The position numbers and the translations under genes were made by a program. From Saccostrea echinata (lineage: Eukaryota), in the NCBI RefSeq assembly GCF_033153115.1, contig NW_026889753.1, positions 1-64,000 of the forward strand: a DNA stretch of 64,000 bases, given 5' to 3'. Of this stretch, positions 1 through 41,271 are shown piece after piece. Position 1 is the first letter of the stretch. Every line of letters begins with the position of its first letter. The notes under the pieces were generated by a model. The model worked only from the letters and a program-made list of their open reading frames with translations. It was not told the DNA's origin and ran no database searches.

Positions 1-1565
1 ATTTGATAAAAACTTCAAATGGGATCCCAAGACATTTTGAAAAAAATGATTTTGTCCACGTTTTGCCTCAGATTTGTTTGCGGTAGCCGCTGTTTTGTAC
101 AAATATAACCTAGGATACAGTGTATCTAATGATCAGGTGCTTGGGATGTATAAAGCGCTCTACATTAAGAAAGCTCATAAACTTTATAAATGCATGTGTT
201 TGGTTATTTCAATTTTAATCCATTTTGTCTCGAGTTAACTCCATTCCAATTCTTAAGATAGGATCCTCTTTGAATCATGTCGGCGACTGTGACAACATTC
301 TGTGCAGTTTTATGCCCTTTTATTTCGTATTACTTAATACTTTTTATCTGGTCGCATAAAAAAATACGGGAAACATGGCTAACTTCTAAAATTGCATGCG
401 CCATGAATTGCAAATTGAAAGAGATATCAGCTCCAAAATGAAATATTTTATCGTTTTTCATCAGAACTTTCCTGAAAGACTCGTCATGAAAAAAAAATCT
501 CGGTGAATCATTTAATTTTTTTTGGTGCTGCATCACACCAGTATTCAATTGGGTTCTACATTCATAGCAAGATTACGCAAAAGTTACTCAAAGAAAGTTC
601 CGCTGATTTCTATTTTCAAATTCTGTAAATTAATGCTTCCTAAGCAAACCACATCGCAATTCAAAAAGGCGCTCAGCTTCATGGTCATCAAAGTCAATCA
701 AGTGCTTTAAAGTCAAGCGCAGAACCTAGCAACTCCCCTTCTTAAAAGAAAAAAAAATCATTTTGTCTCGTGTTTTAGTAAATCAAGTAGAAATCTGAAA
801 GGTGCACGTGGTTTTTATACGTCAATCTTCTCTCCTTCTCTCTCTTTAAATGTATATATATATTAAGTATATATGTAATCTTGGTGACATCTTGATCCGA
901 ATGGGGAGGGGGGGGGGTGTTAAGGAATTTGTCACCTCTTTCCTGAACCTCGAAAAAAAATAATAGAAATGCTTGAAAATCAAAAGAAAATTATTTTTTG
1001 TAACGAAGCATTTAAAAGTCGTACAAATTTGAATTTTCTTGTCCTAAGCAAGGATAAACCAATCAAAATGAACTTAGTCAATTGTAGTTCTAAATACAGA
1101 GATACCCTCTTTCCTTTTTATCTCTTTTGGTATCTTATTTTAGGCCTATATTATATTAATTTTGGAATCAATTATTAGGAATATCATAGCTTTAGAGGAA
1201 TTATCCAACTGGATAAAATGGAACTTTTTTTAGTGCGGCGCATGATGCAGCTTTTTGGGTGATGTGTAGACTACCTGTCAACATGTGAAACTGTGAATGT
1301 TTACGCTCAGTGTTCTGTCTTAAAAGCCGCATTTTTCCTCTCTCATTTGTTGGGGTCAATTTTTGTTTTAGTAATTAGCGGCCGAGAGTTCACTTAATTA
1401 ATGTAATCAAGTGTGCGAGAGCATTGGGGAAGCGCTAGTCTATGTTCGATCGTAAGTCTTGAAAATATCTACTTTTCGTTTCACTATTCACAACCAAAGG
1501 AATTGCAAGTCTGCATACAATAGAAAGTCTACTTATTCAATCGTAAGTCTTTGCCACCAGAAGCA

Positions 1566-1602
1566 TATAAAAGGAGGATTGAAACTGAGAAACAATCATA
1601 CT
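1566..1602 (+). promoter_or_regulatory. TATA box with initiator-like element of the array gene (present in every unit)
   Basis: TATAAAA at 1566-1572 and TCATACT at 1596-1602, about 30 bp downstream. The TATA box lies 89 bp before the ATG. Confidence 0.7.
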
Positions 1603-1654
1603 TTGTACAACGCTCTACACAAGTACTTCACACAACGTTAGTAGACACTATAGC

Positions 1655-3335
1655 ATGGCTGTACCACCAGGCGGTCCCATAGAGATTTGTTTCTCGTTTG
1701 ATACAACTGGCTCAATGTCAAGTTCTATCAATGCGGTTAAACAGAATGTCCAGGAAATGATTCAACGACTGCAAACGGATATCCCCGGTATTAGAATCGC
1801 TGTATTTGCTCACGGAGATTACTGTGACAGAGACTCATCTTATGTCACCAAGTATGTAGATTTTTCCACGGATCTGAACGAACTGTGTAACTGGGTCAAA
1901 AGCGTTGGGTCCACTGGAGGCGGGGATTCCGATGAGTGTTATGAGCTGGTCTTGCACCAGGTACAAACTTTGTCTTGGACACCTGGCACACAGAGGGCGC
2001 TGGTGATGATAGGAGATGCCCATCCTCATGACGTGAACTACCCAGACAACAAACTGAAATTGGACTGGAAGGAGGAAGTGGAAAAATTAGCAGTCATGGT
2101 AAGAAAATCATTTTAGTTTAAAGGTGAAAACTTAATGCCGTTTCTTTATTTCAAACCTTCACTGTTTTAGATTCCTGTCTTTCTTATTCAAGAGTATAAG
2201 TATATGTCGTCTGTATTTCAGGGTGTGCGAGTGTACGGTGTACAATGTAGAGCTTCTAGTGACAAAAGAACGAACGACTTCTACCAAACACTGGCCGATA
2301 AGACAGCTGGCAGACGAGTAGAACTGGAGCAGTTCTCCAATCTCTTTGACTTCATTATGGCCATCTGCTACAGAGAGCAAGGAGCAGAGTTCCTGGATAT
2401 CTATGAACAGGAAGTACGCGCCAGAGACGCTGGAATAGGTGTTCATAAGGATTTGAATGCTATGTTCGGAGCACTCAAAGACGATGAACCTTCCACATCT
2501 TCATCCAGCGTGGAGACTTCATCTTCCAAGTCCAGAACACTTCCCTACAAGCCGGCCCTGAAAAAGCTGCCATCTCTGACAAAAGCAGCCTCCATCACAA
2601 AGCTGAAGAAAAAGAGTACCTCCATTCACGCAGTGAGGAAAACAATCGTCAAAAAGACCGTTCCTTCTGCAATGGATAGAAAGAGAGCTAAACATCTAGC
2701 CATTTCATGCCAAAAGGTATTCAATCTCAAATACGTATCATTTTTCTTTCAATTCATGATATTCATATCTTGCATGTATATATAGTATTCAATATTAGAC
2801 TTTCATATAATAGGTACATAATTTATTTCAGCTAAACACACTAAGAAAGCTGAAGAGAGAAAATGTTGCAGAGACAAATTTTTCGATGAATAGAATTCAT
2901 TGGTCCCCGTGGGAACTAGTTATTTCTCCCATTAAACCAGAGGATGACTCGGTGTGGACAGAAAGACATCGAGGAAGAAAGGGTTTCAGAAAATCCACCG
3001 TCTGCGGAGGAAAGACATTCCCTGCCGCTGTGTACGAGTTCTCTGTGAGGAAACCATCTGATTCTAAACGTTATGTTACCTACTGTAAACTTTCCTCGGG
3101 ATTCACCAGTACACGATGCTGGGAATCTAGACTCTTGTCCGATTCTGACGTTCGATCTCAAGTGAACAAAGTGGTGTCTTTGGGATATTCTGTCTTTGTT
3201 CGTAGATGTTTGGTAACTGACTCTAACAAAAACACCATTAAGAAATCCCTTCTCAGATATGACTATGCATGGAGAAAAGTGCGAAATGTAAGAGACTCTC
3301 ACAGAAATATTCAGTTGATGGCAGCCTCAAATTAA
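1655..3335 (+). CDS. vWA domain + basic linker + ET/GIY-YIG-like domain protein, copy 1 (480 aa; exons 1655-2098, 2222-2716, 2832-3335)
   Basis: Three ORF-track fragments join in frame through two phase-0 introns: ATG|gtaaga...tttcag|GGT (123 bp) and AAG|gtattc...tttcag|CTA (115 bp). vWA motifs: FSFDTTGSM, FAHGDYCD, GGGDSDECYE, LVMIGDAHPH. C-terminal motifs: WSPW, AVYEF, GYSVFVR, YDYAW. Confidence 0.93.
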
Positions 3336-3424
3336 CATTGTATTCAAAATGTCTATTCTGTTGACATTTATTTTCACTTATACTGTTTTAGCGTTGACAA
3401 TTATTTGATTTTAATGTAAATGTA

Positions 3425-3430
3425 AATAAA
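3425..3430 (+). terminator. Polyadenylation signal of the array gene (present in every unit)
   Basis: AATAAA 90 bp after the stop codon, followed by a T/GT-rich downstream element (gattttatttgtgtg). Confidence 0.7.
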
Positions 3431-5410
3431 AGAAACAAAAAACATGAACTGATTTTATTTGTGTGAAAACTATGAAGGTTGAAGTATTTAAAAACGAAAG
3501 TGAGCGCAGTTAATACTTAGCTTTGAAAAAAAAAAATCATGATGGCGATAATGAAAAGAAAGAGATCGGGAGGAAGAAATGAGCAAGAAGTGTTTTACAA
3601 AGAGTAGTGTACAAACAGATATTATTTTGTTTGATTTCAATGTCTAAGGTTTGTTCTGAAACAAAATGATTTACATCAATCAAATAAATTTTATTCCTCA
3701 GTGTTAAACCATATCCATATTTAAAGCATTTATGCTAGCTATATATTTGATAAAAACTTCAAATGGGATCCCAAGACATTTTGAAAAAAATGATTTTGTC
3801 CACGTTTTGCCTCAGATTTGTTTGCGGTAGCCGCTGTTTTGTACAAATATAACCTAGGATACAGTGTATCTAATGATCAGGTGCTTGGGATATATAAAGC
3901 GCTCTACATTAAGAAAGCTCATAAACTTTATAAATGCATGTGTTTGGTTATTTCAATTTTAATCCATTTTGTCTCGAGTTAACTCCATTCCAATTCTTAA
4001 GATAGGATCCTCTTTGAATCATGTCGGCGACTGTGACAACATTCTGTGCAGTTTTATGCCCTTTTATTTCGTATTACTTAATACTTTTTATCTGGTCGCA
4101 TAAAAAAATACGGGAAACATGGCTAACTTCTAAAATTGCATGCGCCATGAATTGCAAATTGAAAGAGATATCAGCTCCAAAATGAAATATTTTATCGTTT
4201 TTCATCAGAACTTTCCTGAAAGACTCGTCATGAAAAAAAAATCTCGGTGAATCATTTAATTTTTTTTGGTGCTGCATCACACCAGTATTCAATTGGGTTC
4301 TACATTCATAGCAAGATTACGCCGCCTTTCAGGTAGATGTTACTCAAAGAAAGTTCCGCTGATTTCTATTTTCAAATTCTGTAAATTAATGCTTCCTAAG
4401 CAAACCACATCGCAATTCAAAAAGGCGCTCAGCTTCATGGTCATCAAAGTCAATCAAGTGCTTTAAAGTCAAGCGCAGAACCTAGCAACTCCCCTTCTTA
4501 AAAGAAAAAAAAATCATTTTGTCTCGTGTTTTAGTAAATCAAGTAGAAATCTGAAAGGTGCACGTGGTTTTTATACGTCAATCTTCTCTCCTTCTCTCTC
4601 TTTAAATGTATATATATATTAAGTATATATGTAATCTTGGTGACATCTTGATCCGAATGGGGAGGGGGGGGGGTTTTAAGGAATTTGTCACCTCTTTCCT
4701 GAACCTCGAAAAAAAATAATAGAAATGCTTGAAAATCAAAAGAAAATTATTTTTTGTAACGAAGCATTTAAAAGTCGTACAAATTTGAATTTTCTTGTCC
4801 TAAGCAAGGATAAACCAATCAAAATGAACTTAGTCAATTGTAGTTCTAAATACAGAGATACCCTCTTTCCTTTTTATCTCTTTTGGTATCTTATTTTAGG
4901 CCTATATTATATTAATTTTGGAATCAATTATTAGGAATATCATAGCTTTAGAGGAATTATCCAACTGGATAAAATGGAACTTTTTTTAGTGCGGCGCATG
5001 ATGCAGCTTTTTGGGTGATGTGTAGACTACCTGTCAACATGTGAAACTGTGAATGTTTACGCTCAGTGTTCTGTCTTAAAAGCCGCATTTTTCCTCTCTC
5101 ATTTGTTGGGGTCAATTTTTGTTTTAGTAATTAGCGGCCGAGAGTTCACTTAATTAATGTAATCAAGTGTGCGAGAGCATTGGGGAAGCGCTAGTCTATG
5201 TTCGATCGTAAGTCTTGAAAATATCTACTTTTCGTTTCACTATTCACAACCAAAGGAATTGCAAGTCTGCATACAATAGAAAGTCTACTTATTCAATCGT
5301 AAGTCTTTGCCACCAGAAGCATATAAAAGGAGGATTGAAACTGAGAAACAATCATACTTTGTACAACGCTCTACACAAGTACTTCACACAACGTTAGTAG
5401 ACACTATAGC

Positions 5411-7091
5411 ATGGCTGTACCACCAGGCGGTCCCATAGAGATTTGTTTCTCGTTTGATACAACTGGCTCAATGTCAAGTTCTATCAATGCGGTTAAACAG
5501 AATGTCCAGGAAATGATTCAACGACTGCAAACGGATATCCCCGGTATTAGAATCGCTGTATTTGCTCACGGAGATTACTGTGACAGAGACTCATCTTATG
5601 TCACCAAGTATGTAGATTTTTCCACGGATCTGAACGAACTGTGTAACTGGGTCAAAAGCGTTGGGTCCACTGGAGGCGGGGATTCCGATGAGTGTTATGA
5701 GCTGGTCTTGCACCAGGTACAAACTTTGTCTTGGACACCTGGCACACAGAGGGCGCTGGTGATGATAGGAGATGCCCATCCTCATGACGTGAACTACCCA
5801 GACAACAAACTGAAATTGGACTGGAAGGAGGAAGTGGAAAAATTAGCAGTCATGGTAAGAAAATCATTTTAGTTTAAAGGTGAAAACTTAATGCCGTTTC
5901 TTTATTTCAAACCTTCACTGTTTTAGATTCCTGTCTTTCTTATTCAAGAGTATAAGTATATGTCGTCTGTATTTCAGGGTGTGCGAGTGTACGGTGTACA
6001 ATGTAGAGCTTCTAGTGACAAAAGAACGAACGACTTCTACCAAACACTGGCCGATAAGACAGCTGGCAGACGAGTAGAACTGGAGCAGTTCTCCAATCTC
6101 TTTGACTTCATTATGGCCATCTGCTACAGAGAGCAAGGAGCAGAGTTCCTGGATATCTATGAACAGGAAGTACGCGCCAGAGACGCTGGAATAGGTGTTC
6201 ATAAGGATTTGAATGCTATGTTCGGAGCACTCAAAGACGATGAACCTTCCACATCTTCATCCAGCGTGGAGACTTCATCTTCCAAGTCCAGAACACTTCC
6301 CTACAAGCCGGCCCTGAAAAAGCTGCCATCTCTGACAAAAGCAGCCTCCATCACAAAGCTGAAGAAAAAGAGTACCTCCATTCACGCAGTGAGGAAAACA
6401 ATCGTCAAAAAGACCGTTCCTTCTGCAATGGATAGAAAGAGAGCTAAACATCTAGCCATTTCATGCCAAAAGGTATTCAATCTCAAATACGTATCATTTT
6501 TCTTTCAATTCATGATATTCATATCTTGCATGTATATATAGTATTCAATATTAGACTTTCATATAATAGGTACATAATTTATTTCAGCTAAACACACTAA
6601 GAAAGCTGAAGAGAGAAAATGTTGCAGAGACAAATTTTTCGATGAATAGAATTCATTGGTCCCCGTGGGAACTAGTTATTTCTCCCATTAAACCAGAGGA
6701 TGACTCGGTGTGGACAGAAAGACATCGAGGAAGAAAGGGTTTCAGAAAATCCACCGTCTGCGGAGGAAAGACATTCCCTGCCGCTGTGTACGAGTTCTCT
6801 GTGAGGAAACCATCTGATTCTAAACGTTATGTTACCTACTGTAAACTTTCCTCGGGATTCACCAGTACACGATGCTGGGAATCTAGACTCTTGTCCGATT
6901 CTGACGTTCGATCTCAAGTGAACAAAGTGGTGTCTTTGGGATATTCTGTCTTTGTTCGTAGATGTTTGGTAACTGACTCTAACAAAAACACCATTAAGAA
7001 ATCCCTTCTCAGATATGACTATGCATGGAGAAAAGTGCGAAATGTAAGAGACTCTCACAGAAATATTCAGTTGATGGCAGCCTCAAATTAA
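5411..7091 (+). CDS. vWA/ET-like protein copy 2 (exons 5411-5854, 5978-6472, 6588-7091)
   Basis: Translation and splice sites match copy 1. Confidence 0.92.
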
Positions 7092-9166
7092 CATTGTATT
7101 CAAAATGTCTATTCTGTTGACATTTATTTTCACTTATACTGTTTTAGCGTTGACAATTATTTGATTTTAATGTAAATGTAAATAAAAGAAACAAAAAACA
7201 TGAACTGATTTTATTTGTGTGAAAACTATGAAGGTTGAAGTATTTAAAAACGAAAGTGAGCGCAGTTAATACTTAGCTTTGAAAAAAAAAAATCATGATG
7301 GCGATAATGAAAAGAAAGAGATCGGGAGGAAGAAATGAGCAAGAAGTGTTTTACAAAGAGTAGTGTACAAACAGATATTATTTTGTTTGATTTCAATGTC
7401 TAAGGTTTGTTCTGAAACAAAATGATTTACATCAATCAAATAAATTTTATTCCTCAGTGTTAAACCATATCCATATTTAAAGCATTTATGCTAGCTATAT
7501 ATTTGATAAAAACTTCAAATGGGATCCCAAGACATTTTGAAAAAAATGATTTTGTCCACGTTTTGCCTCAGATTTGTTTGCGGTAGCCGCTGTTTTGTAC
7601 AAATATAACCTAGGATACAGTGTATCTAATGATCAGGTGCTTGGGATGTATAAAGCGCTCTACATTAAGAAAGCTCATAAACTTTATAAATGCATGTGTT
7701 TGGTTATTTCAATTTTAATCCATTTTGTCTCGAGTTAACTCCATTCCAATTCTTAAGATAGGATCCTCTTTGAATCATGTCGGCGACTGTGACAACATTC
7801 TGTGCAGTTTTATGCCCTTTTATTTCGTATTACTTAATACTTTTTATCTGGTCGCATAAAAAAATACGGGAAACATGGCTAACTTCTAAAATTGCATGCG
7901 CCATGAATTGCAAATTGAAAGAGATATCAGCTCCAAAATGAAATATTTTATCGTTTTTCATCAGAACTTTCCTGAAAGACTCGTCATGAAAAAAAAATCT
8001 CGGTGAATCATTTAATTTTTTTTGGTGCTGCATCACACCAGTATTCAATTGGGTTCTACATTCATAGCAAGATTACGCCGCCTTTCAGGTAGATGTTACT
8101 CAAAGAAAGTTCCGCTGATTTCTATTTTCAAATTCTGTAAATTAATGCTTCCTAAGCAAACCACATCGCAATTCAAAAAGGCGCTCAGCTTCATGGTCAT
8201 CAAAGTCAATCAAGTGCTTTAAAGTCAAGCGCAGAACCTAGCAACTCCCCTTCTTAAAAGAAAAAAAAATCATTTTGTCTCGTGTTTTAGTAAATCAAGT
8301 AGAAATCTGAAAGGTGCACGTGGTTTTTATACGTCAATCTTCTCTCCTTCTCTCTCTTTAAATGTATATATATATTAAGTATATATGTAATCTTGGTGAC
8401 ATCTTGATCCGAATGGGGAGGGGGGGGGGTGTTAAGGAATTTGTCACCTCTTTCCTGAACCTCGAAAAAAAATAATAGAAATGCTTGAAAATCAAAAGAA
8501 AATTATTTTTTGTAACGAAGCATTTAAAAGTCGTACAAATTTGAATTTTCTTGTCCTAAGCAAGGATAAACCAATCAAAATGAACTTAGTCAATTGTAGT
8601 TCTAAATACAGAGATACCCTCTTTCCTTTTTATCTCTTTTGGTATCTTATTTTAGGCCTATATTATATTAATTTTGGAATCAATTATTAGGAATATCATA
8701 GCTTTAGAGGAATTATCCAACTGGATAAAATGGAACTTTTTTTAGTGCGGCGCATGATGCAGCTTTTTGGGTGATGTGTAGACTACCTGTCAACATGTGA
8801 AACTGTGAATGTTTACGCTCAGTGTTCTGTCTTAAAAGCCGCATTTTTCCTCTCTCATTTGTTGGGGTCAATTTTTGTTTTAGTAATTAGCGGCCGAGAG
8901 TTCACTTAATTAATGTAATCAAGTGTGCGAGAGCATTGGGGAAGCGCTAGTCTATGTTCGATCGTAAGTCTTGAAAATATCTACTTTTCGTTTCACTATT
9001 CACAACCAAAGGAATTGCAAGTCTGCATACAATAGAAAGTCTACTTATTCAATCGTAAGTCTTTGCCACCAGAAGCATATAAAAGGAGGATTGAAACTGA
9101 GAAACAATCATACTTTGTACAACGCTCTACACAAGTACTTCACACAACGTTAGTAGACACTATAGC

Positions 9167-10847
9167 ATGGCTGTACCACCAGGCGGTCCCATAGAGATTT
9201 GTTTCTCGTTTGATACAACTGGCTCAATGTCAAGTTCTATCAATGCGGTTAAACAGAATGTCCAGGAAATGATTCAACGACTGCAAACGGATATCCCCGG
9301 TATTAGAATCGCTGTATTTGCTCACGGAGATTACTGTGACAGAGACTCATCTTATGTCACCAAGTATGTAGATTTTTCCACGGATCTGAACGAACTGTGT
9401 AACTGGGTCAAAAGCGTTGGGTCCACTGGAGGCGGGGATTCCGATGAGTGTTATGAGCTGGTCTTGCACCAGGTACAAACTTTGTCTTGGACACCTGGCA
9501 CACAGAGGGCGCTGGTGATGATAGGAGATGCCCATCCTCATGACGTGAACTACCCAGACAACAAACTGAAATTGGACTGGAAGGAGGAAGTGGAAAAATT
9601 AGCAGTCATGGTAAGAAAATCATTTTAGTTTAAAGGTGAAAACTTAATGCCGTTTCTTTATTTCAAACCTTCACTGTTTTAGATTCCTGTCTTTCTTATT
9701 CAAGAGTATAAGTATATGTCGTCTGTATTTCAGGGTGTGCGAGTGTACGGTGTACAATGTAGAGCTTCTAGTGACAAAAGAACGAACGACTTCTACCAAA
9801 CACTGGCCGATAAGACAGCTGGCAGACGAGTAGAACTGGAGCAGTTCTCCAATCTCTTTGACTTCATTATGGCCATCTGCTACAGAGAGCAAGGAGCAGA
9901 GTTCCTGGATATCTATGAACAGGAAGTACGCGCCAGAGACGCTGGAATAGGTGTTCATAAGGATTTGAATGCTATGTTCGGAGCACTCAAAGACGATGAA
10001 CCTTCCACATCTTCATCCAGCGTGGAGACTTCATCTTCCAAGTCCAGAACACTTCCCTACAAGCCGGCCCTGAAAAAGCTGCCATCTCTGACAAAAGCAG
10101 CCTCCATCACAAAGCTGAAGAAAAAGAGTACCTCCATTCACGCAGTGAGGAAAACAATCGTCAAAAAGACCGTTCCTTCTGCAATGGATAGAAAGAGAGC
10201 TAAACATCTAGCCATTTCATGCCAAAAGGTATTCAATCTCAAATACGTATCATTTTTCTTTCAATTCATGATATTCATATCTTGCATGTATATATAGTAT
10301 TCAATATTAGACTTTCATATAATAGGTACATAATTTATTTCAGCTAAACACACTAAGAAAGCTGAAGAGAGAAAATGTTGCAGAGACAAATTTTTCGATG
10401 AATAGAATTCATTGGTCCCCGTGGGAACTAGTTATTTCTCCCATTAAACCAGAGGATGACTCGGTGTGGACAGAAAGACATCGAGGAAGAAAGGGTTTCA
10501 GAAAATCCACCGTCTGCGGAGGAAAGACATTCCCTGCCGCTGTGTACGAGTTCTCTGTGAGGAAACCATCTGATTCTAAACGTTATGTTACCTACTGTAA
10601 ACTTTCCTCGGGATTCACCAGTACACGATGCTGGGAATCTAGACTCTTGTCCGATTCTGACGTTCGATCTCAAGTGAACAAAGTGGTGTCTTTGGGATAT
10701 TCTGTCTTTGTTCGTAGATGTTTGGTAACTGACTCTAACAAAAACACCATTAAGAAATCCCTTCTCAGATATGACTATGCATGGAGAAAAGTGCGAAATG
10801 TAAGAGACTCTCACAGAAATATTCAGTTGATGGCAGCCTCAAATTAA
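9167..10847 (+). CDS. vWA/ET-like protein copy 3 (exons 9167-9610, 9734-10228, 10344-10847)
   Basis: Translation and splice sites match copy 1. Confidence 0.92.
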
Positions 10848-12922
10848 CATTGTATTCAAAATGTCTATTCTGTTGACATTTATTTTCACTTATACTGTTT
10901 TAGCGTTGACAATTATTTGATTTTAATGTAAATGTAAATAAAAGAAACAAAAAACATGAACTGATTTTATTTGTGTGAAAACTATGAAGGTTGAAGTATT
11001 TAAAAACGAAAGTGAGCGCAGTTAATACTTAGCTTTGAAAAAAAAAAATCATGATGGCGATAATGAAAAGAAAGAGATCGGGAGGAAGAAATGAGCAAGA
11101 AGTGTTTTACAAAGAGTAGTGTACAAACAGATATTATTTTGTTTGATTTCAATGTCTAAGGTTTGTTCTGAAACAAAATGATTTACATCAATCAAATAAA
11201 TTTTATTCCTCAGTGTTAAACCATATCCATATTTAAAGCATTTATGCTAGCTATATATTTGATAAAAACTTCAAATGGGATCCCAAGACATTTTGAAAAA
11301 AATGATTTTGTCCACGTTTTGCCTCAGATTTGTTTGCGGTAGCCGCTGTTTTGTACAAATATAACCTAGGATACAGTGTATCTAATGATCAGGTGCTTGG
11401 GATATATAAAGCGCTCTACATTAAGAAAGCTCATAAACTTTATAAATGCATGTGTTTGGTTATTTCAATTTTAATCCATTTTGTCTCGAGTTAACTCCAT
11501 TCCAATTCTTAAGATAGGATCCTCTTTGAATCATGTCGGCGACTGTGACAACATTCTGTGCAGTTTTATGCCCTTTTATTTCGTATTACTTAATACTTTT
11601 TATCTGGTCGCATAAAAAAATACGGGAAACATGGCTAACTTCTAAAATTGCATGCGCCATGAATTGCAAATTGAAAGAGATATCAGCTCCAAAATGAAAT
11701 ATTTTATCGTTTTTCATCAGAACTTTCCTGAAAGACTCGTCATGAAAAAAAAATCTCGGTGAATCATTTAATTTTTTTTGGTGCTGCATCACACCAGTAT
11801 TCAATTGGGTTCTACATTCATAGCAAGATTACGCCGCCTTTCAGGTAGATGTTACTCAAAGAAAGTTCCGCTGATTTCTATTTTCAAATTCTGTAAATTA
11901 ATGCTTCCTAAGCAAACCACATCGCAATTCAAAAAGGCGCTCAGCTTCATGGTCATCAAAGTCAATCAAGTGCTTTAAAGTCAAGCGCAGAACCTAGCAA
12001 CTCCCCTTCTTAAAAGAAAAAAAAATCATTTTGTCTCGTGTTTTAGTAAATCAAGTAGAAATCTGAAAGGTGCACGTGGTTTTTATACGTCAATCTTCTC
12101 TCCTTCTCTCTCTTTAAATGTATATATATATTAAGTATATATGTAATCTTGGTGACATCTTGATCCGAATGGGGAGGGGGGGGGGTTTTAAGGAATTTGT
12201 CACCTCTTTCCTGAACCTCGAAAAAAAATAATAGAAATGCTTGAAAATCAAAAGAAAATTATTTTTTGTAACGAAGCATTTAAAAGTCGTACAAATTTGA
12301 ATTTTCTTGTCCTAAGCAAGGATAAACCAATCAAAATGAACTTAGTCAATTGTAGTTCTAAATACAGAGATACCCTCTTTCCTTTTTATCTCTTTTGGTA
12401 TCTTATTTTAGGCCTATATTATATTAATTTTGGAATCAATTATTAGGAATATCATAGCTTTAGAGGAATTATCCAACTGGATAAAATGGAACTTTTTTTA
12501 GTGCGGCGCATGATGCAGCTTTTTGGGTGATGTGTAGACTACCTGTCAACATGTGAAACTGTGAATGTTTACGCTCAGTGTTCTGTCTTAAAAGCCGCAT
12601 TTTTCCTCTCTCATTTGTTGGGGTCAATTTTTGTTTTAGTAATTAGCGGCCGAGAGTTCACTTAATTAATGTAATCAAGTGTGCGAGAGCATTGGGGAAG
12701 CGCTAGTCTATGTTCGATCGTAAGTCTTGAAAATATCTACTTTTCGTTTCACTATTCACAACCAAAGGAATTGCAAGTCTGCATACAATAGAAAGTCTAC
12801 TTATTCAATCGTAAGTCTTTGCCACCAGAAGCATATAAAAGGAGGATTGAAACTGAGAAACAATCATACTTTGTACAACGCTCTACACAAGTACTTCACA
12901 CAACGTTAGTAGACACTATAGC

Positions 12923-14603
12923 ATGGCTGTACCACCAGGCGGTCCCATAGAGATTTGTTTCTCGTTTGATACAACTGGCTCAATGTCAAGTTCTATCAAT
13001 GCGGTTAAACAGAATGTCCAGGAAATGATTCAACGACTGCAAACGGATATCCCCGGTATTAGAATCGCTGTATTTGCTCACGGAGATTACTGTGACAGAG
13101 ACTCATCTTATGTCACCAAGTATGTAGATTTTTCCACGGATCTGAACGAACTGTGTAACTGGGTCAAAAGCGTTGGGTCCACTGGAGGCGGGGATTCCGA
13201 TGAGTGTTATGAGCTGGTCTTGCACCAGGTACAAACTTTGTCTTGGACACCTGGCACACAGAGGGCGCTGGTGATGATAGGAGATGCCCATCCTCATGAC
13301 GTGAACTACCCAGACAACAAACTGAAATTGGACTGGAAGGAGGAAGTGGAAAAATTAGCAGTCATGGTAAGAAAATCATTTTAGTTTAAAGGTGAAAACT
13401 TAATGCCGTTTCTTTATTTCAAACCTTCACTGTTTTAGATTCCTGTCTTTCTTATTCAAGAGTATAAGTATATGTCGTCTGTATTTCAGGGTGTGCGAGT
13501 GTACGGTGTACAATGTAGAGCTTCTAGTGACAAAAGAACGAACGACTTCTACCAAACACTGGCCGATAAGACAGCTGGCAGACGAGTAGAACTGGAGCAG
13601 TTCTCCAATCTCTTTGACTTCATTATGGCCATCTGCTACAGAGAGCAAGGAGCAGAGTTCCTGGATATCTATGAACAGGAAGTACGCGCCAGAGACGCTG
13701 GAATAGGTGTTCATAAGGATTTGAATGCTATGTTCGGAGCACTCAAAGACGATGAACCTTCCACATCTTCATCCAGCGTGGAGACTTCATCTTCCAAGTC
13801 CAGAACACTTCCCTACAAGCCGGCCCTGAAAAAGCTGCCATCTCTGACAAAAGCAGCCTCCATCACAAAGCTGAAGAAAAAGAGTACCTCCATTCACGCA
13901 GTGAGGAAAACAATCGTCAAAAAGACCGTTCCTTCTGCAATGGATAGAAAGAGAGCTAAACATCTAGCCATTTCATGCCAAAAGGTATTCAATCTCAAAT
14001 ACGTATCATTTTTCTTTCAATTCATGATATTCATATCTTGCATGTATATATAGTATTCAATATTAGACTTTCATATAATAGGTACATAATTTATTTCAGC
14101 TAAACACACTAAGAAAGCTGAAGAGAGAAAATGTTGCAGAGACAAATTTTTCGATGAATAGAATTCATTGGTCCCCGTGGGAACTAGTTATTTCTCCCAT
14201 TAAACCAGAGGATGACTCGGTGTGGACAGAAAGACATCGAGGAAGAAAGGGTTTCAGAAAATCCACCGTCTGCGGAGGAAAGACATTCCCTGCCGCTGTG
14301 TACGAGTTCTCTGTGAGGAAACCATCTGATTCTAAACGTTATGTTACCTACTGTAAACTTTCCTCGGGATTCACCAGTACACGATGCTGGGAATCTAGAC
14401 TCTTGTCCGATTCTGACGTTCGATCTCAAGTGAACAAAGTGGTGTCTTTGGGATATTCTGTCTTTGTTCGTAGATGTTTGGTAACTGACTCTAACAAAAA
14501 CACCATTAAGAAATCCCTTCTCAGATATGACTATGCATGGAGAAAAGTGCGAAATGTAAGAGACTCTCACAGAAATATTCAGTTGATGGCAGCCTCAAAT
14601 TAA
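12923..14603 (+). CDS. vWA/ET-like protein copy 4 (exons 12923-13366, 13490-13984, 14100-14603)
   Basis: Translation and splice sites match copy 1. Confidence 0.92.
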
Positions 14604-16678
14604 CATTGTATTCAAAATGTCTATTCTGTTGACATTTATTTTCACTTATACTGTTTTAGCGTTGACAATTATTTGATTTTAATGTAAATGTAAATAAAAG
14701 AAACAAAAAACATGAACTGATTTTATTTGTGTGAAAACTATGAAGGTTGAAGTATTTAAAAACGAAAGTGAGCGCAGTTAATACTTAGCTTTGAAAAAAA
14801 AAAATCATGATGGCGATAATGAAAAGAAAGAGATCGGGAGGAAGAAATGAGCAAGAAGTGTTTTACAAAGAGTAGTGTACAAACAGATATTATTTTGTTT
14901 GATTTCAATGTCTAAGGTTTGTTCTGAAACAAAATGATTTACATCAATCAAATAAATTTTATTCCTCAGTGTTAAACCATATCCATATTTAAAGCATTTA
15001 TGCTAGCTATATATTTGATAAAAACTTCAAATGGGATCCCAAGACATTTTGAAAAAAATGATTTTGTCCACGTTTTGCCTCAGATTTGTTTGCGGTAGCC
15101 GCTGTTTTGTACAAATATAACCTAGGATACAGTGTATCTAATGATCAGGTGCTTGGGATGTATAAAGCGCTCTACATTAAGAAAGCTCATAAACTTTATA
15201 AATGCATGTGTTTGGTTATTTCAATTTTAATCCATTTTGTCTCGAGTTAACTCCATTCCAATTCTTAAGATAGGATCCTCTTTGAATCATGTCGGCGACT
15301 GTGACAACATTCTGTGCAGTTTTATGCCCTTTTATTTCGTATTACTTAATACTTTTTATCTGGTCGCATAAAAAAATACGGGAAACATGGCTAACTTCTA
15401 AAATTGCATGCGCCATGAATTGCAAATTGAAAGAGATATCAGCTCCAAAATGAAATATTTTATCGTTTTTCATCAGAACTTTCCTGAAAGACTCGTCATG
15501 AAAAAAAAATCTCGGTGAATCATTTAATTTTTTTTGGTGCTGCATCACACCAGTATTCAATTGGGTTCTACATTCATAGCAAGATTACGCCGCCTTTCAG
15601 GTAGATGTTACTCAAAGAAAGTTCCGCTGATTTCTATTTTCAAATTCTGTAAATTAATGCTTCCTAAGCAAACCACATCGCAATTCAAAAAGGCGCTCAG
15701 CTTCATGGTCATCAAAGTCAATCAAGTGCTTTAAAGTCAAGCGCAGAACCTAGCAACTCCCCTTCTTAAAAGAAAAAAAAATCATTTTGTCTCGTGTTTT
15801 AGTAAATCAAGTAGAAATCTGAAAGGTGCACGTGGTTTTTATACGTCAATCTTCTCTCCTTCTCTCTCTTTAAATGTATATATATATTAAGTATATATGT
15901 AATCTTGGTGACATCTTGATCCGAATGGGGAGGGGGGGGGGTGTTAAGGAATTTGTCACCTCTTTCCTGAACCTCGAAAAAAAATAATAGAAATGCTTGA
16001 AAATCAAAAGAAAATTATTTTTTGTAACGAAGCATTTAAAAGTCGTACAAATTTGAATTTTCTTGTCCTAAGCAAGGATAAACCAATCAAAATGAACTTA
16101 GTCAATTGTAGTTCTAAATACAGAGATACCCTCTTTCCTTTTTATCTCTTTTGGTATCTTATTTTAGGCCTATATTATATTAATTTTGGAATCAATTATT
16201 AGGAATATCATAGCTTTAGAGGAATTATCCAACTGGATAAAATGGAACTTTTTTTAGTGCGGCGCATGATGCAGCTTTTTGGGTGATGTGTAGACTACCT
16301 GTCAACATGTGAAACTGTGAATGTTTACGCTCAGTGTTCTGTCTTAAAAGCCGCATTTTTCCTCTCTCATTTGTTGGGGTCAATTTTTGTTTTAGTAATT
16401 AGCGGCCGAGAGTTCACTTAATTAATGTAATCAAGTGTGCGAGAGCATTGGGGAAGCGCTAGTCTATGTTCGATCGTAAGTCTTGAAAATATCTACTTTT
16501 CGTTTCACTATTCACAACCAAAGGAATTGCAAGTCTGCATACAATAGAAAGTCTACTTATTCAATCGTAAGTCTTTGCCACCAGAAGCATATAAAAGGAG
16601 GATTGAAACTGAGAAACAATCATACTTTGTACAACGCTCTACACAAGTACTTCACACAACGTTAGTAGACACTATAGC

Positions 16679-18359
16679 ATGGCTGTACCACCAGGCGGTC
16701 CCATAGAGATTTGTTTCTCGTTTGATACAACTGGCTCAATGTCAAGTTCTATCAATGCGGTTAAACAGAATGTCCAGGAAATGATTCAACGACTGCAAAC
16801 GGATATCCCCGGTATTAGAATCGCTGTATTTGCTCACGGAGATTACTGTGACAGAGACTCATCTTATGTCACCAAGTATGTAGATTTTTCCACGGATCTG
16901 AACGAACTGTGTAACTGGGTCAAAAGCGTTGGGTCCACTGGAGGCGGGGATTCCGATGAGTGTTATGAGCTGGTCTTGCACCAGGTACAAACTTTGTCTT
17001 GGACACCTGGCACACAGAGGGCGCTGGTGATGATAGGAGATGCCCATCCTCATGACGTGAACTACCCAGACAACAAACTGAAATTGGACTGGAAGGAGGA
17101 AGTGGAAAAATTAGCAGTCATGGTAAGAAAATCATTTTAGTTTAAAGGTGAAAACTTAATGCCGTTTCTTTATTTCAAACCTTCACTGTTTTAGATTCCT
17201 GTCTTTCTTATTCAAGAGTATAAGTATATGTCGTCTGTATTTCAGGGTGTGCGAGTGTACGGTGTACAATGTAGAGCTTCTAGTGACAAAAGAACGAACG
17301 ACTTCTACCAAACACTGGCCGATAAGACAGCTGGCAGACGAGTAGAACTGGAGCAGTTCTCCAATCTCTTTGACTTCATTATGGCCATCTGCTACAGAGA
17401 GCAAGGAGCAGAGTTCCTGGATATCTATGAACAGGAAGTACGCGCCAGAGACGCTGGAATAGGTGTTCATAAGGATTTGAATGCTATGTTCGGAGCACTC
17501 AAAGACGATGAACCTTCCACATCTTCATCCAGCGTGGAGACTTCATCTTCCAAGTCCAGAACACTTCCCTACAAGCCGGCCCTGAAAAAGCTGCCATCTC
17601 TGACAAAAGCAGCCTCCATCACAAAGCTGAAGAAAAAGAGTACCTCCATTCACGCAGTGAGGAAAACAATCGTCAAAAAGACCGTTCCTTCTGCAATGGA
17701 TAGAAAGAGAGCTAAACATCTAGCCATTTCATGCCAAAAGGTATTCAATCTCAAATACGTATCATTTTTCTTTCAATTCATGATATTCATATCTTGCATG
17801 TATATATAGTATTCAATATTAGACTTTCATATAATAGGTACATAATTTATTTCAGCTAAACACACTAAGAAAGCTGAAGAGAGAAAATGTTGCAGAGACA
17901 AATTTTTCGATGAATAGAATTCATTGGTCCCCGTGGGAACTAGTTATTTCTCCCATTAAACCAGAGGATGACTCGGTGTGGACAGAAAGACATCGAGGAA
18001 GAAAGGGTTTCAGAAAATCCACCGTCTGCGGAGGAAAGACATTCCCTGCCGCTGTGTACGAGTTCTCTGTGAGGAAACCATCTGATTCTAAACGTTATGT
18101 TACCTACTGTAAACTTTCCTCGGGATTCACCAGTACACGATGCTGGGAATCTAGACTCTTGTCCGATTCTGACGTTCGATCTCAAGTGAACAAAGTGGTG
18201 TCTTTGGGATATTCTGTCTTTGTTCGTAGATGTTTGGTAACTGACTCTAACAAAAACACCATTAAGAAATCCCTTCTCAGATATGACTATGCATGGAGAA
18301 AAGTGCGAAATGTAAGAGACTCTCACAGAAATATTCAGTTGATGGCAGCCTCAAATTAA
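16679..18359 (+). CDS. vWA/ET-like protein copy 5 (exons 16679-17122, 17246-17740, 17856-18359)
   Basis: Translation and splice sites match copy 1. Confidence 0.92.
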
Positions 18360-20434
18360 CATTGTATTCAAAATGTCTATTCTGTTGACATTTATTTTCA
18401 CTTATACTGTTTTAGCGTTGACAATTATTTGATTTTAATGTAAATGTAAATAAAAGAAACAAAAAACATGAACTGATTTTATTTGTGTGAAAACTATGAA
18501 GGTTGAAGTATTTAAAAACGAAAGTGAGCGCAGTTAATACTTAGCTTTGAAAAAAAAAAATCATGATGGCGATAATGAAAAGAAAGAGATCGGGAGGAAG
18601 AAATGAGCAAGAAGTGTTTTACAAAGAGTAGTGTACAAACAGATATTATTTTGTTTGATTTCAATGTCTAAGGTTTGTTCTGAAACAAAATGATTTACAT
18701 CAATCAAATAAATTTTATTCCTCAGTGTTAAACCATATCCATATTTAAAGCATTTATGCTAGCTATATATTTGATAAAAACTTCAAATGGGATCCCAAGA
18801 CATTTTGAAAAAAATGATTTTGTCCACGTTTTGCCTCAGATTTGTTTGCGGTAGCCGCTGTTTTGTACAAATATAACCTAGGATACAGTGTATCTAATGA
18901 TCAGGTGCTTGGGATATATAAAGCGCTCTACATTAAGAAAGCTCATAAACTTTATAAATGCATGTGTTTGGTTATTTCAATTTTAATCCATTTTGTCTCG
19001 AGTTAACTCCATTCCAATTCTTAAGATAGGATCCTCTTTGAATCATGTCGGCGACTGTGACAACATTCTGTGCAGTTTTATGCCCTTTTATTTCGTATTA
19101 CTTAATACTTTTTATCTGGTCGCATAAAAAAATACGGGAAACATGGCTAACTTCTAAAATTGCATGCGCCATGAATTGCAAATTGAAAGAGATATCAGCT
19201 CCAAAATGAAATATTTTATCGTTTTTCATCAGAACTTTCCTGAAAGACTCGTCATGAAAAAAAAATCTCGGTGAATCATTTAATTTTTTTTGGTGCTGCA
19301 TCACACCAGTATTCAATTGGGTTCTACATTCATAGCAAGATTACGCCGCCTTTCAGGTAGATGTTACTCAAAGAAAGTTCCGCTGATTTCTATTTTCAAA
19401 TTCTGTAAATTAATGCTTCCTAAGCAAACCACATCGCAATTCAAAAAGGCGCTCAGCTTCATGGTCATCAAAGTCAATCAAGTGCTTTAAAGTCAAGCGC
19501 AGAACCTAGCAACTCCCCTTCTTAAAAGAAAAAAAAATCATTTTGTCTCGTGTTTTAGTAAATCAAGTAGAAATCTGAAAGGTGCACGTGGTTTTTATAC
19601 GTCAATCTTCTCTCCTTCTCTCTCTTTAAATGTATATATATATTAAGTATATATGTAATCTTGGTGACATCTTGATCCGAATGGGGAGGGGGGGGGGTTT
19701 TAAGGAATTTGTCACCTCTTTCCTGAACCTCGAAAAAAAATAATAGAAATGCTTGAAAATCAAAAGAAAATTATTTTTTGTAACGAAGCATTTAAAAGTC
19801 GTACAAATTTGAATTTTCTTGTCCTAAGCAAGGATAAACCAATCAAAATGAACTTAGTCAATTGTAGTTCTAAATACAGAGATACCCTCTTTCCTTTTTA
19901 TCTCTTTTGGTATCTTATTTTAGGCCTATATTATATTAATTTTGGAATCAATTATTAGGAATATCATAGCTTTAGAGGAATTATCCAACTGGATAAAATG
20001 GAACTTTTTCTAGTGCGGCGCATGATGCAGCTTTTTGGGTGATGTGTAGACTACCTGTCAACATGTGAAACTGTGAATGTTTACGCTCAGTGTTCTGTCT
20101 TAAAAGCCGCATTTTTCCTCTCTCATTTGTTGGGGTCAATTTTTGTTTTAGTAATTAGCGGCCGAGAGTTCACTTAATTAATGTAATCAAGTGTGCGAGA
20201 GCATTGTGGAAGCGCTAGTCTATGTTCGATCGTAAGTCTTGAAAATATCTACTTTTCGTTTCACTATTCACAACCAAAGGAATTGCAAGTCTGCATACAA
20301 TAGAAAGTCTACTTATTCAATCGTAAGTCTTTGCCACCAGAAGCATATAAAAGGAGGATTGAAACTGAGAAACAATCATACTTTGTACAACGCTCTACAC
20401 AAGTACTTCACACAACGTTAGTAGACACTATAGC

Positions 20435-22115
20435 ATGGCTGTACCACCAGGCGGTCCCATAGAGATTTGTTTCTCGTTTGATACAACTGGCTCAATGTCA
20501 AGTTCTATCAATGCGGTTAAACAGAATGTCCAGGAAATGATTCAACGACTGCAAACGGATATCCCCGGTATTAGAATCGCTGTATTTGCTCACGGAGATT
20601 ACTGTGACAGAGACTCATCTTATGTCACCAAGTATGTAGATTTTTCCACGGATCTGAACGAACTGTGTAACTGGGTCAAAAGCGTTGGGTCCACTGGAGG
20701 CGGGGATTCCGATGAGTGTTATGAGCTGGTCTTGCACCAGGTACAAACTTTGTCTTGGACACCTGGCACACAGAGGGCGCTGGTGATGATAGGAGATGCC
20801 CATCCTCATGACGTGAACTACCCAGACAACAAACTGAAATTGGACTGGAAGGAGGAAGTGGAAAAATTAGCAGTCATGGTAAGAAAATCATTTTAGTTTA
20901 AAGGTGAAAACTTAATGCCGTTTCTTTATTTCAAACCTTCACTGTTTTAGATTCCTGTCTTTCTTATTCAAGAGTATAAGTATATGTCGTCTGTATTTCA
21001 GGGTGTGCGAGTGTACGGTGTACAATGTAGAGCTTCTAGTGACAAAAGAACGAACGACTTCTACCAAACACTGGCCGATAAGACAGCTGGCAGACGAGTA
21101 GAACTGGAGCAGTTCTCCAATCTCTTTGACTTCATTATGGCCATCTGCTACAGAGAGCAAGGAGCAGAGTTCCTGGATATCTATGAACAGGAAGTACGCG
21201 CCAGAGACGCTGGAATAGGTGTTCATAAGGATTTGAATGCTATGTTCGGAGCACTCAAAGACGATGAACCTTCCACATCTTCATCCAGCGTGGAGACTTC
21301 ATCTTCCAAGTCCAGAACACTTCCCTACAAGCCGGCCCTGAAAAAGCTGCCATCTCTGACAAAAGCAGCCTCCATCACAAAGCTGAAGAAAAAGAGTACC
21401 TCCATTCACGCAGTGAGGAAAACAATCGTCAAAAAGACCGTTCCTTCTGCAATGGATAGAAAGAGAGCTAAACATCTAGCCATTTCATGCCAAAAGGTAT
21501 TCAATCTCAAATACGTATCATTTTTCTTTCAATTCATGATATTCATATCTTGCATGTATATATAGTATTCAATATTAGACTTTCATATAATAGGTACATA
21601 ATTTATTTCAGCTAAACACACTAAGAAAGCTGAAGAGAGAAAATGTTGCAGAGACAAATTTTTCGATGAATAGAATTCATTGGTCCCCGTGGGAACTAGT
21701 TATTTCTCCCATTAAACCAGAGGATGACTCGGTGTGGACAGAAAGACATCGAGGAAGAAAGGGTTTCAGAAAATCCACCGTCTGCGGAGGAAAGACATTC
21801 CCTGCCGCTGTGTACGAGTTCTCTGTGAGGAAACCATCTGATTCTAAACGTTATGTTACCTACTGTAAACTTTCCTCGGGATTCACCAGTACACGATGCT
21901 GGGAATCTAGACTCTTGTCCGATTCTGACGTTCGATCTCAAGTGAACAAAGTGGTGTCTTTGGGATATTCTGTCTTTGTTCGTAGATGTTTGGTAACTGA
22001 CTCTAACAAAAACACCATTAAGAAATCCCTTCTCAGATATGACTATGCATGGAGAAAAGTGCGAAATGTAAGAGACTCTCACAGAAATATTCAGTTGATG
22101 GCAGCCTCAAATTAA
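20435..22115 (+). CDS. vWA/ET-like protein copy 6 (exons 20435-20878, 21002-21496, 21612-22115)
   Basis: Translation and splice sites match copy 1. Confidence 0.92.
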
Positions 22116-24196
22116 CATTGTATTCAAAATGTCTATTCTGTTGACATTTATTTTCACTTATACTGTTTTAGCGTTGACAATTATTTGATTTTAATGTAAA
22201 TGTAAATAAAAGAAACAAAAAACATGAACTGATTTTATTTGTGTGAAAACTATGAAGGTTGAAGTATTTAAAAACGAAAGTGAGCGCAGTTAATACTTAG
22301 CTTTGAAAAAAAAAAATCATGATGGCGATAATGAAAAGAAAGAGATCGGGAGGAAGAAATGAGCAAGAAGTGTTTTACAAAGAGTAGTGTACAAACAGAT
22401 ATTATTTTGTTTGATTTCAATGTCTAAGGTTTGTTCTGAAACAAAATGATTTACATCAATCAAATAAATTTTATTCCTCAGTGTTAAACCATATCCATAT
22501 TTAAAGCATTTATGCTAGCTATATATTTGATAAAAACTTCAAATGGGATCCCAAGACATTTTGAAAAAAATGATTTTGTCCACGTTTTGCCTCAGATTTG
22601 TTTGCGGTAGCCGCTGTTTTGTACAAATATAACCTAGGATACAGTGTATCTAATGATCAGGTGCTTGGGATGTATAAAGCGCTCTACATTAAGAAAGCTC
22701 ATAAACTTTATAAATGCATGTGTTTGGTTATTTCAATTTTAATCCATTTTGTCTCGAGTTAACTCCATTCCAATTCTTAAGATAGGATCCTCTTTGAATC
22801 ATGTCGGCGACTGTGACAACATTCTGTGCAGTTTTATGCCCTTTTATTTCGTATTACTTAATACTTTTTATCTGGTCGCATAAAAAAATACGGGAAACAT
22901 GGCTAACTTCTAAAATTGCATGCGCCATGAATTGCAAATTGAAAGAGATATCAGCTCCAAAATGAAATATTTTATCGTTTTTCATCAGAACTTTCCTGAA
23001 AGACTCGTCATGAAAAAAAAATCTCGGTGAATCATTTAATTTTTTTTGGTGCTGCATCACACCAGTATTCAATTGGGTTCTACATTCATAGCAAGATTAC
23101 GCCGCCTTTCAGGTAGATGTTACTCAAAGAAAGTTCCGCTGATTTCTATTTTCAAATTCTGTAAATTAATGCTTCCTAAGCAAACCACATCGCAATTCAA
23201 AAAGGCGCTCAGCTTCATGGTCATCAAAGTCAATCAAGTGCTTTAAAGTCAAGCGCAGAACCTAGCAACTCCCCTTCTTAAAAGAAAAAAAAATCATTTT
23301 GTCTCGTGTTTTAGTAAATCAAGTAGAAATCTGAAAGGTGCACGTGGTTTTTATACGTCAATCTTCTCTCCTTCTCTCTCTTTAAATGTATATATATATT
23401 AAGTATATATGTAATCTTGGTGACATCTTGATCCGAATGGGGAGGGGGGGGGGGGGGGTTTTAAGGAATTTGTCACCTCTTTCCTGAACCTCGAAAAAAA
23501 ATAATAGAAATGCTTGAAAATCAAAAGAAAATTATTTTTTGTAACGAAGCATTTAAAAGTCGTACAAATTTGAATTTTCTTGTCCTAAGCAAGGATAAAC
23601 CAATCAAAATGAACTTAGTCAATTGTAGTTCTAAATACAGAGATACCCTCTTTCCTTTTTATCTCTTTTGGTATCTTATTTTAGGCCTATATTATATTAA
23701 TTTTGGAATCAATTATTAGGAATATCATAGCTTTAGAGGAATTATCCAACTGGATAAAATGGAACTTTTTTTTAGTGCGGCGCATGATGCAGCTTTTTGG
23801 GTGATGTGTAGACTACCTGTCAACATGTGAAACTGTGAATGTTTACGCTCAGTGTTCTGTCTTAAAAGCCGCATTTTTCCTCTCTCATTTGTTGGGGTCA
23901 ATTTTTGTTTTAGTAATTAGCGGCCGAGAGTTCACTTAATTAATGTAATCAAGTGTGCGAGAGCATTGGGGAAGCGCTAGTCTATGTTCGATCGTAAGTC
24001 TTGAAAATATCTACTTTTCGTTTCACTATTCACAACCAAAGGAATTGCAAGTCTGCATACAATAGAAAGTCTACTTATTCAATCGTAAGTCTTTGCCACC
24101 AGAAGCATATAAAAGGAGGATTGAAACTGAGAAACAATCATACTTTGTACAACGCTCTACACAAGTACTTCACACAACGTTAGTAGACACTATAGC

Positions 24197-40902: not shown

Positions 40903-41271
40903 CATTGTATTCAAAATGTCTATTCTGTTGACATTTATTTTCACTTATACTGTTTTAGCGTTGACAATTATTTTGTTTTAATGTAAAATGTAAATAAAAG
41001 AAACAAAAAACATGAACTGATTTTATTTGTGTGAAAACTATGAAGGTTGAAGTATTTAAAAACGAAAGTGAGCGCACTTAATACTTAGCTTTGAAAAAAA
41101 AACTTATGATATTGATATGGCGATAATGAAAAGAAAGAGATCGGGGGAAAGAAATAAGCAGAGTGTTTTACAAAGAGTAGTATACAAACAGATATTATTT
41201 TGTTTGATTTCAATGTTTAAACATGTCTGAAACAAAGTGATTTACATCAATCAAATAAATTTTATTCTTCT

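Follow-up and report, generated by a model that had tools for sequence, protein, structure and literature searches.

A tandemly amplified oyster gene predicted to join a vWA domain to a GIY-YIG-fold domain of the plant ET type

The first 64 kb (G000:C4:1-64000, hereafter the window) of a 12.4-Mb contig in the 923-Mb assembly of the oyster Saccostrea echinata carries a tandem array of a three-exon gene, whose product combines an N-terminal vWA domain with a C-terminal domain of predicted GIY-YIG fold. The gene belongs to a lophotrochozoan family, and on balance we favour the view that its product is an intracellular adaptor, made of a vWA domain, a basic linker and a GIY-YIG-fold domain that does not cut. 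In such an adaptor the acidic vWA domain, with its metal-ion-dependent adhesion site (MIDAS) intact, would grip a partner protein, and a disordered, strongly basic Ser/Lys-rich linker would join it to the second module. That module, a basic domain of the ET/PF19239 type (ET, EFFECTOR OF TRANSCRIPTION) that keeps the fold-defining residues and both signature tyrosines, would most likely bind nucleic acid. The same design logic, a vWA interaction domain linked to a module that contacts nucleic acid, may be seen in Ku70/Ku80, Ro60 and TFIIH p44, in each of which a vWA domain is joined to a nucleic-acid-binding or zinc module; their partner domains are unrelated to the oyster one and no sequence relationship was detected, so that the comparison is offered as an analogy.

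A selectively maintained three-exon gene

The first copy of the gene lies on the + strand and begins with an ATG at 1655. Its exons of 444, 495 and 504 nt are all in phase 0 and, when concatenated to check the frame, give 480 codons and a stop codon with no internal stops. The initial annotation had proposed that three open reading frame (ORF) fragments are spliced into one 480-amino-acid protein, and the pieces, the open frame and the GT/AG borders (at 2098/2099, 2221/2222, 2716/2717 and 2831/2832) are all present, as are the peptides that it quoted for exon 3. Exon 1 (1655..2098, 148 codons) encodes the N-terminal two thirds of the vWA domain, including the D-T-T-G-S stretch of the MIDAS motif at 1700-1714, and is followed by intron 1 (2099..2221, GT..AG, phase 0). 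The first 88 codons of exon 2 (2222..2485) complete the vWA domain and add its conserved trailing helices (MAICYRE...YEQEVRAR), and the last 77 codons (2486..2716) encode a Ser/Thr- and Lys-rich basic linker that is predicted to be disordered. Intron 2 (2717..2831, likewise GT..AG and phase 0) separates these from exon 3 (2832..3335), the 167 codons and stop codon of which encode the PF19239/ET-type domain of predicted GIY-YIG fold.

Support for this gene model came from a paralogue on the same contig, 2.28 Mb away (G000:C4:2279018-2280651). Exons 1, 2 and 3 of the two genes are 95.5%, 89% and 90% identical, compared with 57% for both introns and ~45% for the flanks; indels within the exons span 3 nt, and the paralogue retains the GT/AG sites. 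Synonymous divergence (dS) between the array gene and this paralogue is 0.245 and nonsynonymous divergence (dN) 0.044, which gives a dN/dS of 0.18 overall and of 0.06, 0.17 and 0.27 for exons 1, 2 and 3, respectively. Annotated mollusc proteins cross junction 1 without a gap (in P0158 the exon 1 part ends at residue 157 and the exon 2 part begins at residue 158), and junction 2 is crossed in K1QP63 of Magallana gigas (C. gigas), where "...AISCQK" continues directly into "INNLRKLKRENV", exactly matching the gene model. Because of the paralogue comparison and of orthologues that read straight across, both predicted junctions (2098/2222 and 2716/2832) are supported. At the level of sequence comparison, these results confirm a real, selectively maintained protein-coding gene.

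Two domains, and whether the second one cuts

Exons were searched one at a time, with P0130, a natural full-length orthologue of 471 amino acids, serving as a stand-in for the whole protein. The vWA fold was accordingly tested on P0130, which was folded with 16 family members, rather than on the joined window protein. Exon 1 matched the Pfam families VWA_4 (PF25106; 8.9e-11, 42.1 bits against a cut-off of 27) and VWA (PF00092; 1.5e-5, 25.8 bits against 23.8), and in the P0130 model the vWA part matched integrin beta I-domains (E 7.5e-11, probability 1.0). In that model residues 5-230, the vWA domain, had a predicted local distance difference test (pLDDT) score of ~90, the linker (232-300) was disordered with a pLDDT of 20-37, and a separate C-terminal domain followed. 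The segments SFDTTGSM, AHGDY, T-GGGD..ECYE and IGD..PH were invariant across orthologues and bacterial relatives; D16-T-T18-G-S20 is a DxTxS variant of the MIDAS motif DxSxS, and at the sites of its downstream Thr/Asp ligands T87/GGGD91 and D121 were invariant in 21 relatives. Profiles and model together support the earlier assignment of the N-terminal domain as a vWA domain of the integrin-beta/hemicentin type with an intact MIDAS motif, for which metal binding is predicted. A domain of this kind grips its partner protein by way of an acidic residue that a metal ion bridges, and the oyster vWA domain is itself acidic (isoelectric point, pI, 4.6). Although it has the fold and the MIDAS-type motifs in common with integrin beta I-like and hemicentin-type vWA domains (PF25106), the window protein has no signal peptide-like N terminus and no extracellular modules, and the nearest sequence relatives of its vWA domain are stand-alone bacterial and phage vWA proteins rather than animal matrix proteins.

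For exon 3, profile searches and structural models support a GIY-YIG fold (a three-stranded sheet with flanking helices) and, within it, the plant ET type (PF19239). The exon itself matched PF19239 (GIY_YIG_domain) at 21.8 bits, against a gathering cut-off of 21.4 (E 1.7e-4), in a match limited to model positions 104-162 and to the last 57 residues encoded by the exon. Exhaustive searching with phmmer brought up 140 clusters (at 50% identity) that match exon 3, among them P0258, which has a full-length PF19239 match (2.8e-12) and also matches PF01541, the classic GIY-YIG catalytic domain (3e-6), above the cut-off. When a profile of 26 mollusc-type domains was compared with three canonical proteins, which match PF19239 as well as PF01541, hhalign aligned them over 147 columns with 99.3% probability (E 1.4e-20). 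The AlphaFold2 model of exon 3 had a pLDDT of 92.7, and of 48,161 representative chains VIA-align ranked T4 EndoII first (Z 7.3, 110 residues aligned at 3.3 A), followed at ranks 2-4 by Hpy188I (Z 4.3), the UvrC GIY-YIG domain (4.0) and I-TevI (3.6), with two further GIY-YIG structures, AtGRXS16 (3.2) and Eco29kI (2.7), at lower ranks. Foldseek likewise placed Hpy188I and EndoII near the top, as weak matches. Neither the exon 3 profile nor the one for the full-length family found a meaningful match among PDB sequences; NCBIfam, PHROGs and PADLOC returned nothing for exons 2 or 3 and no defence-system match; and a homologous-protein search with P0258 returned only P0258 itself.

The initial annotation had described this domain as GIY-YIG-like of the ET/HRT type, and the assignment to the PF19239 subfamily stands, with Pfam, hhalign and the top four structural ranks in agreement; membership of the plant ET proteins does not. 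The oyster and plant ET/HRT domains share an N-terminal WSxW extension, an xYE strand, a VRR strand and a YDYAW motif, but the oyster domain sits at the C terminus of a fusion with a vWA domain, comes without ET repeats and is missing the Glu and Asn of the GIY-YIG active site. ET proteins are described as plant-specific, as binding zinc and DNA through Cys-rich ET repeats at the C terminus, and as having no vWA domain (PMC6585611). The window protein ends 19 residues past YDYAW, and Pfam found nothing else in any exon; because the ET repeats are absent, it is not an ET protein. With the canonical GIY-YIG nucleases (T4 endonuclease II, Hpy188I, the UvrC N-terminal domain and I-TevI) the domain shares the fold and both tyrosines, but at 8-11% sequence identity, without the metal-binding Glu or the Asn and with an Arg of ambiguous placement.

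The residues that bear on catalysis lie, on the + strand and in exon 3 numbering, at 2901-2912 (WSPW), 3033-3038 (Y68-E69), 3081-3083 (Y84), 3129-3131 (R100), 3201-3203 (R124), 3237-3242 (I136/K137) and 3258-3275 (YDYAW-R148). Y68 and Y84 fall in the same alignment columns as the GIY and VYIG tyrosines in P0258; the former is kept in 120 of 142 family domains, and the latter position is Tyr or Phe in 105 of them. The column of the metal-binding Glu is occupied by I136 (hhalign) or K137 (MAFFT), with neither Asp nor Glu in the stretch between D130 and D144, and the position of the conserved Asn after the Glu helix (YAWN) by R148; 30 of the 142 domains have Asn there, and all 16 full-length orthologues examined lack it. 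With the Glu and Asn missing, binding is more likely than cutting, and we conclude with moderate confidence from these alignments that the domain binds rather than cleaves nucleic acid. Linker and C-terminal domain are both strongly basic, with pI values of 10.8 and 10.2, respectively, which would fit an association with nucleic acid or chromatin, and with it a nuclear location.

Several observations weigh against this reading. The column of the catalytic Arg of helix 1 depends on the alignment (C96 by MAFFT, R100 by hhalign), so that the Arg may be retained, and column 100 is Arg in 31 of the 142 domains. E69 and R124 are invariant, and an acidic residue stands one column from the Glu site in 54 of the 142 (~38%); the active site may be non-canonical, and some family members may still be enzymes. 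The VIA-align Z scores are moderate, and a best Z of 7-8 can arise by chance for some models. Nucleic-acid binding is proposed from fold, charge and analogy, and, with the contig beginning inside the array, the copy number may be wrong.

It is conceivable, if unlikely, that the C-terminal domain has remained active as a nuclease that nicks single strands, with a rearranged site (Y68, Y84, R100 or R124, and another acidic residue) that the vWA domain targets or regulates. Retention of both the GIY and the YIG tyrosines, the placement of R100 on the canonical Arg by hhalign, the invariance of E69, the presence of R124 in 138 of the 142 domains and a report that the GIY-YIG domain of plant ET2 nicks DNA (PMC6585611) would all suit such an enzyme. 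The helix that should bear the Glu, however, has no acidic residue, and the Asn has been replaced by Arg. Moreover, the family-wide invariants (W24, S25, W27, E69, W97, R124 and YDYAW) also occur in canonical proteins that retain the Arg, Glu and Asn, and E69 and R124, like the others, therefore look structural. One family member, P0137 (Mercenaria mercenaria XP_053393955.1, 991 amino acids), has six tandem ET-type GIY-YIG-like domains and no vWA domain, an arrangement typical of binding modules and not of nucleases. Loss of the catalytic residues would also be expected if the domain had been re-used to bind protein or another ligand, making the whole a pure protein scaffold, for example in stress or immune signalling. 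The conserved surface is mainly aromatic (W24, W27, W97, Y143, Y145 and W147), vWA proteins are commonly scaffolds, and immune or stress genes are frequent among the tandemly expanded genes of bivalves, all of which speak for a scaffold. We nevertheless hold it to be quite unlikely, given the strongly basic character of domain and linker, the abundance of SPKK-like motifs in the linker of one paralogue (C15, described below) and the fact that all characterised relatives of the fold act on DNA.

The tandem array

The array extends over 1..41267 (+ strand, end approximate) with a 3,756-bp unit and contains 11 complete gene copies, beginning at 1655, 5411, 9167, 12923, 16679, 20435, 24197, 27955, 31711, 35466 and 39222. 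The at least 11-fold amplification noted earlier is thus real in the assembly, and since the array is cut by the contig start it may be longer. Over 1,681 nt, each gene copy shows 0-3 nucleotide differences from the first one; the units are 3,755-3,762 bp long (3,755, 3,756, 3,758 or 3,762), full units show 0-10 differences, and the last unit is 98.9% identical to the preceding one. Copy 8 carries L134Q and copy 11 three substitutions; copy-specific variants lie at 28355, 33316, 40083, 40137 and 40406. In copy 9 (gene start 31711) a T>A change at 33316 (+ strand) converts codon 456 from TAT to TAA, and this premature stop removes YDYAW, the most conserved motif. The other 10 copies have an intact frame, promoter and poly(A) signal. 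In the first copy these signals are a TATAAA box at 1566..1571 (+ strand), 89 nt upstream of the ATG, and an AATAAA polyadenylation signal at 3425..3430 (+ strand), ~90 nt past the stop codon. Each 3.76-kb unit would in this way bring its own TATA promoter and poly(A) signal, and the 11 or more near-identical copies could reflect a recent amplification of gene dosage, or gene conversion could be keeping the array uniform.

An array of this kind might instead have been inflated or created by the assembler, or might be a silent, decaying block, and its amplification would then mean nothing biologically. Seven of the gene copies are identical over the full 1,681 nt, unit 2 equals unit 4 and unit 3 equals unit 5, the array lies at the end of a contig, and one copy has a premature stop, as might be expected of such a block. 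An artefact sits poorly, however, with the distinct unit lengths, the private substitutions, the more diverged edge unit and the degenerate remnants after the array, and silence sits poorly with 10 of 11 copies that retain everything from promoter to poly(A) signal. Given the private and length variants and the diverged edge unit, a real array homogenised by conversion fits better than an assembler loop. Babylonia areolata likewise has several adjacent family loci, four with adjacent numbers falling in one 90% cluster, which hints at an independent tandem duplication in that species. We consider an artefactual or silent array very unlikely.

Other features of the array and its surroundings were as follows. 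The identity of units 2 and 4 and of units 3 and 5 (units 2-5, 3745-18768) holds over the whole unit and suggests duplication by two-unit blocks. Just past the array, degenerate fragments 80-89% identical to the unit spacer (41018-41270, 41935-42062 and 42278-42334) look like what is left of older units at its edge. The spacer of every unit contains an interspersed repeat of ~300 bp (4797..5088, + strand, in the first), ~570 nt upstream of the next gene copy; hundreds of copies, ~74% identical, are spread over many contigs of the genome (975 first-look candidates), and it is probably a short interspersed nuclear element (SINE) or a miniature inverted-repeat transposable element (MITE). A non-coding RNA gene as the driver of the array was considered and set aside, as Rfam found none in the units. 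Beyond the array, in an AT-rich, ORF-poor region, lies a mir-219 precursor (54737-54809, + strand; Rfam RF00251, 72.8 bits against a gathering score of 54.5).

Distribution of the family and its relatives outside animals

Of the 140 clusters found with exon 3, at least 25 contain exon 1-, exon 2- and exon 3-type segments in that order. Their named members come from Magallana, Haliotis, Lottia, Lymnaea, Pecten, Mya, Mytilus, Mercenaria, Mactra, Potamilus, Patella, Littorina, Batillaria, Babylonia and Gigantopelta, and the only one outside the molluscs is the nemertean (ribbon worm) Tubulanus. Mollusca account for 121 of the 123 proteins in the ESM Atlas cluster to which the Lottia orthologue belongs, with VWA as the sole annotation. 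A literature search for the vWA plus GIY-YIG architecture, molluscs included, and for the members' accessions and locus names found no paper, in keeping with the initial annotation, which knew of no characterised protein of this design; the family itself, however, was already in the databases, as mollusc proteins labelled "uncharacterized" or "VWFA domain-containing". What is new is the combination: a taxon-restricted fusion of two known domains, here in a young array.

Within the S. echinata genome the architecture occurs in three old lineages, C4 (the array and the paralogue on the same contig), C20 and C15. Among named sequences, the nearest to exon 3 comes from M. gigas (80% identical), and the C20 copy groups with Crassostrea in the tree. 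In the divergent C15 paralogue (L033, G000:C15:1520000-1529500; L026:39-971) the first exon has 481 codons and places a basic extension N-terminal to the vWA domain; a separate Lys-rich ORF of 310 amino acids, with SPKK-like motifs, lies between the vWA and ET-type domains. A candidate promoter element also distinguishes the lineages. Four AAGTCT motifs (1451..1552, + strand, 204 to 113 nt upstream of the ATG), a hexamer with a background frequency of 0.26 per kb, form a cluster that occupies ~100 nt upstream of the TATA box, recurs in every unit and reads CGTAAGTCTT (twice), TGCAAGTCTG and AGAAAGTCTA. Three of the four are kept in the otherwise unalignable upstream region of the C4 paralogue (L011 about 4898-4945), and the cluster is absent upstream of the C20 and C15 paralogues.

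The relatives of the vWA domain reach well beyond animals. In 293 bacterial species, chiefly filamentous cyanobacteria, myxobacteria, planctomycetes and candidate phyla radiation (CPR) bacteria, single-gene vWA proteins share 50-55% identity with exon 1; for the vWA proteins of crAss-like and jumbo phages the figure is 37-47%. So close a match between bacteria and bivalves is unusual for a vWA domain, and the 50-55% identity of the oyster module with those of cyanobacteria or myxobacteria suggests a conserved ligand. The bacterial proteins are uniform in length (~355-377 amino acids) and have a conserved, unannotated C-terminal domain of ~130 residues that differs from the ET-type domain. Among 80 bacterial loci examined (including L061:4962-6047 and L075:4407-6068, both + strand), we found no conserved gene neighbours and no fusion of a vWA to an ET-type domain. 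A recent horizontal transfer of the vWA domain from bacteria was also considered; the tree, with one bacterial clade and the animals unresolved outside it, neither shows nor excludes one. Among the phages, the vWA gene of a crAss-like Bacteroides phage (L031:2938-3705) lies among nucleotide-metabolism genes and beside thymidylate synthase, and that of a Rhizobium jumbo phage (L032:2986-4089) likewise lies beside thymidylate synthase, in a group of such genes that also includes DHFR and a deoxyribonucleotidase.

The initial annotation suggested a chromatin, germline or defence effector, a role that is speculative. A bolder extension of the adaptor reading would make the protein a new class of nucleic-acid or chromatin sensor, in which a vWA domain, from a clade shared with bacteria, phages and giant viruses, would recognise a conserved target and, in lophotrochozoans, would be coupled to a catalytically dead ET-type reader; it would serve in defence against viruses or transposons, or in germline or embryonic chromatin, with recurrent tandem amplification supplying dosage. 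We regard so specific a role as rather improbable. The value of the non-cutting adaptor that we favour lies in a well-defined candidate rather than in a functional discovery, as its function is inferred. It nevertheless places the ET GIY-YIG subfamily, described as plant-specific in ET proteins, in animals and in a new fusion to a vWA domain, and it defines a family of at least 25 clusters with three old paralogue lineages in a single genome. The near-identical 11-copy array, which hints at a need for high dosage, offers a starting point for the study of recent amplification or concerted evolution in bivalves.

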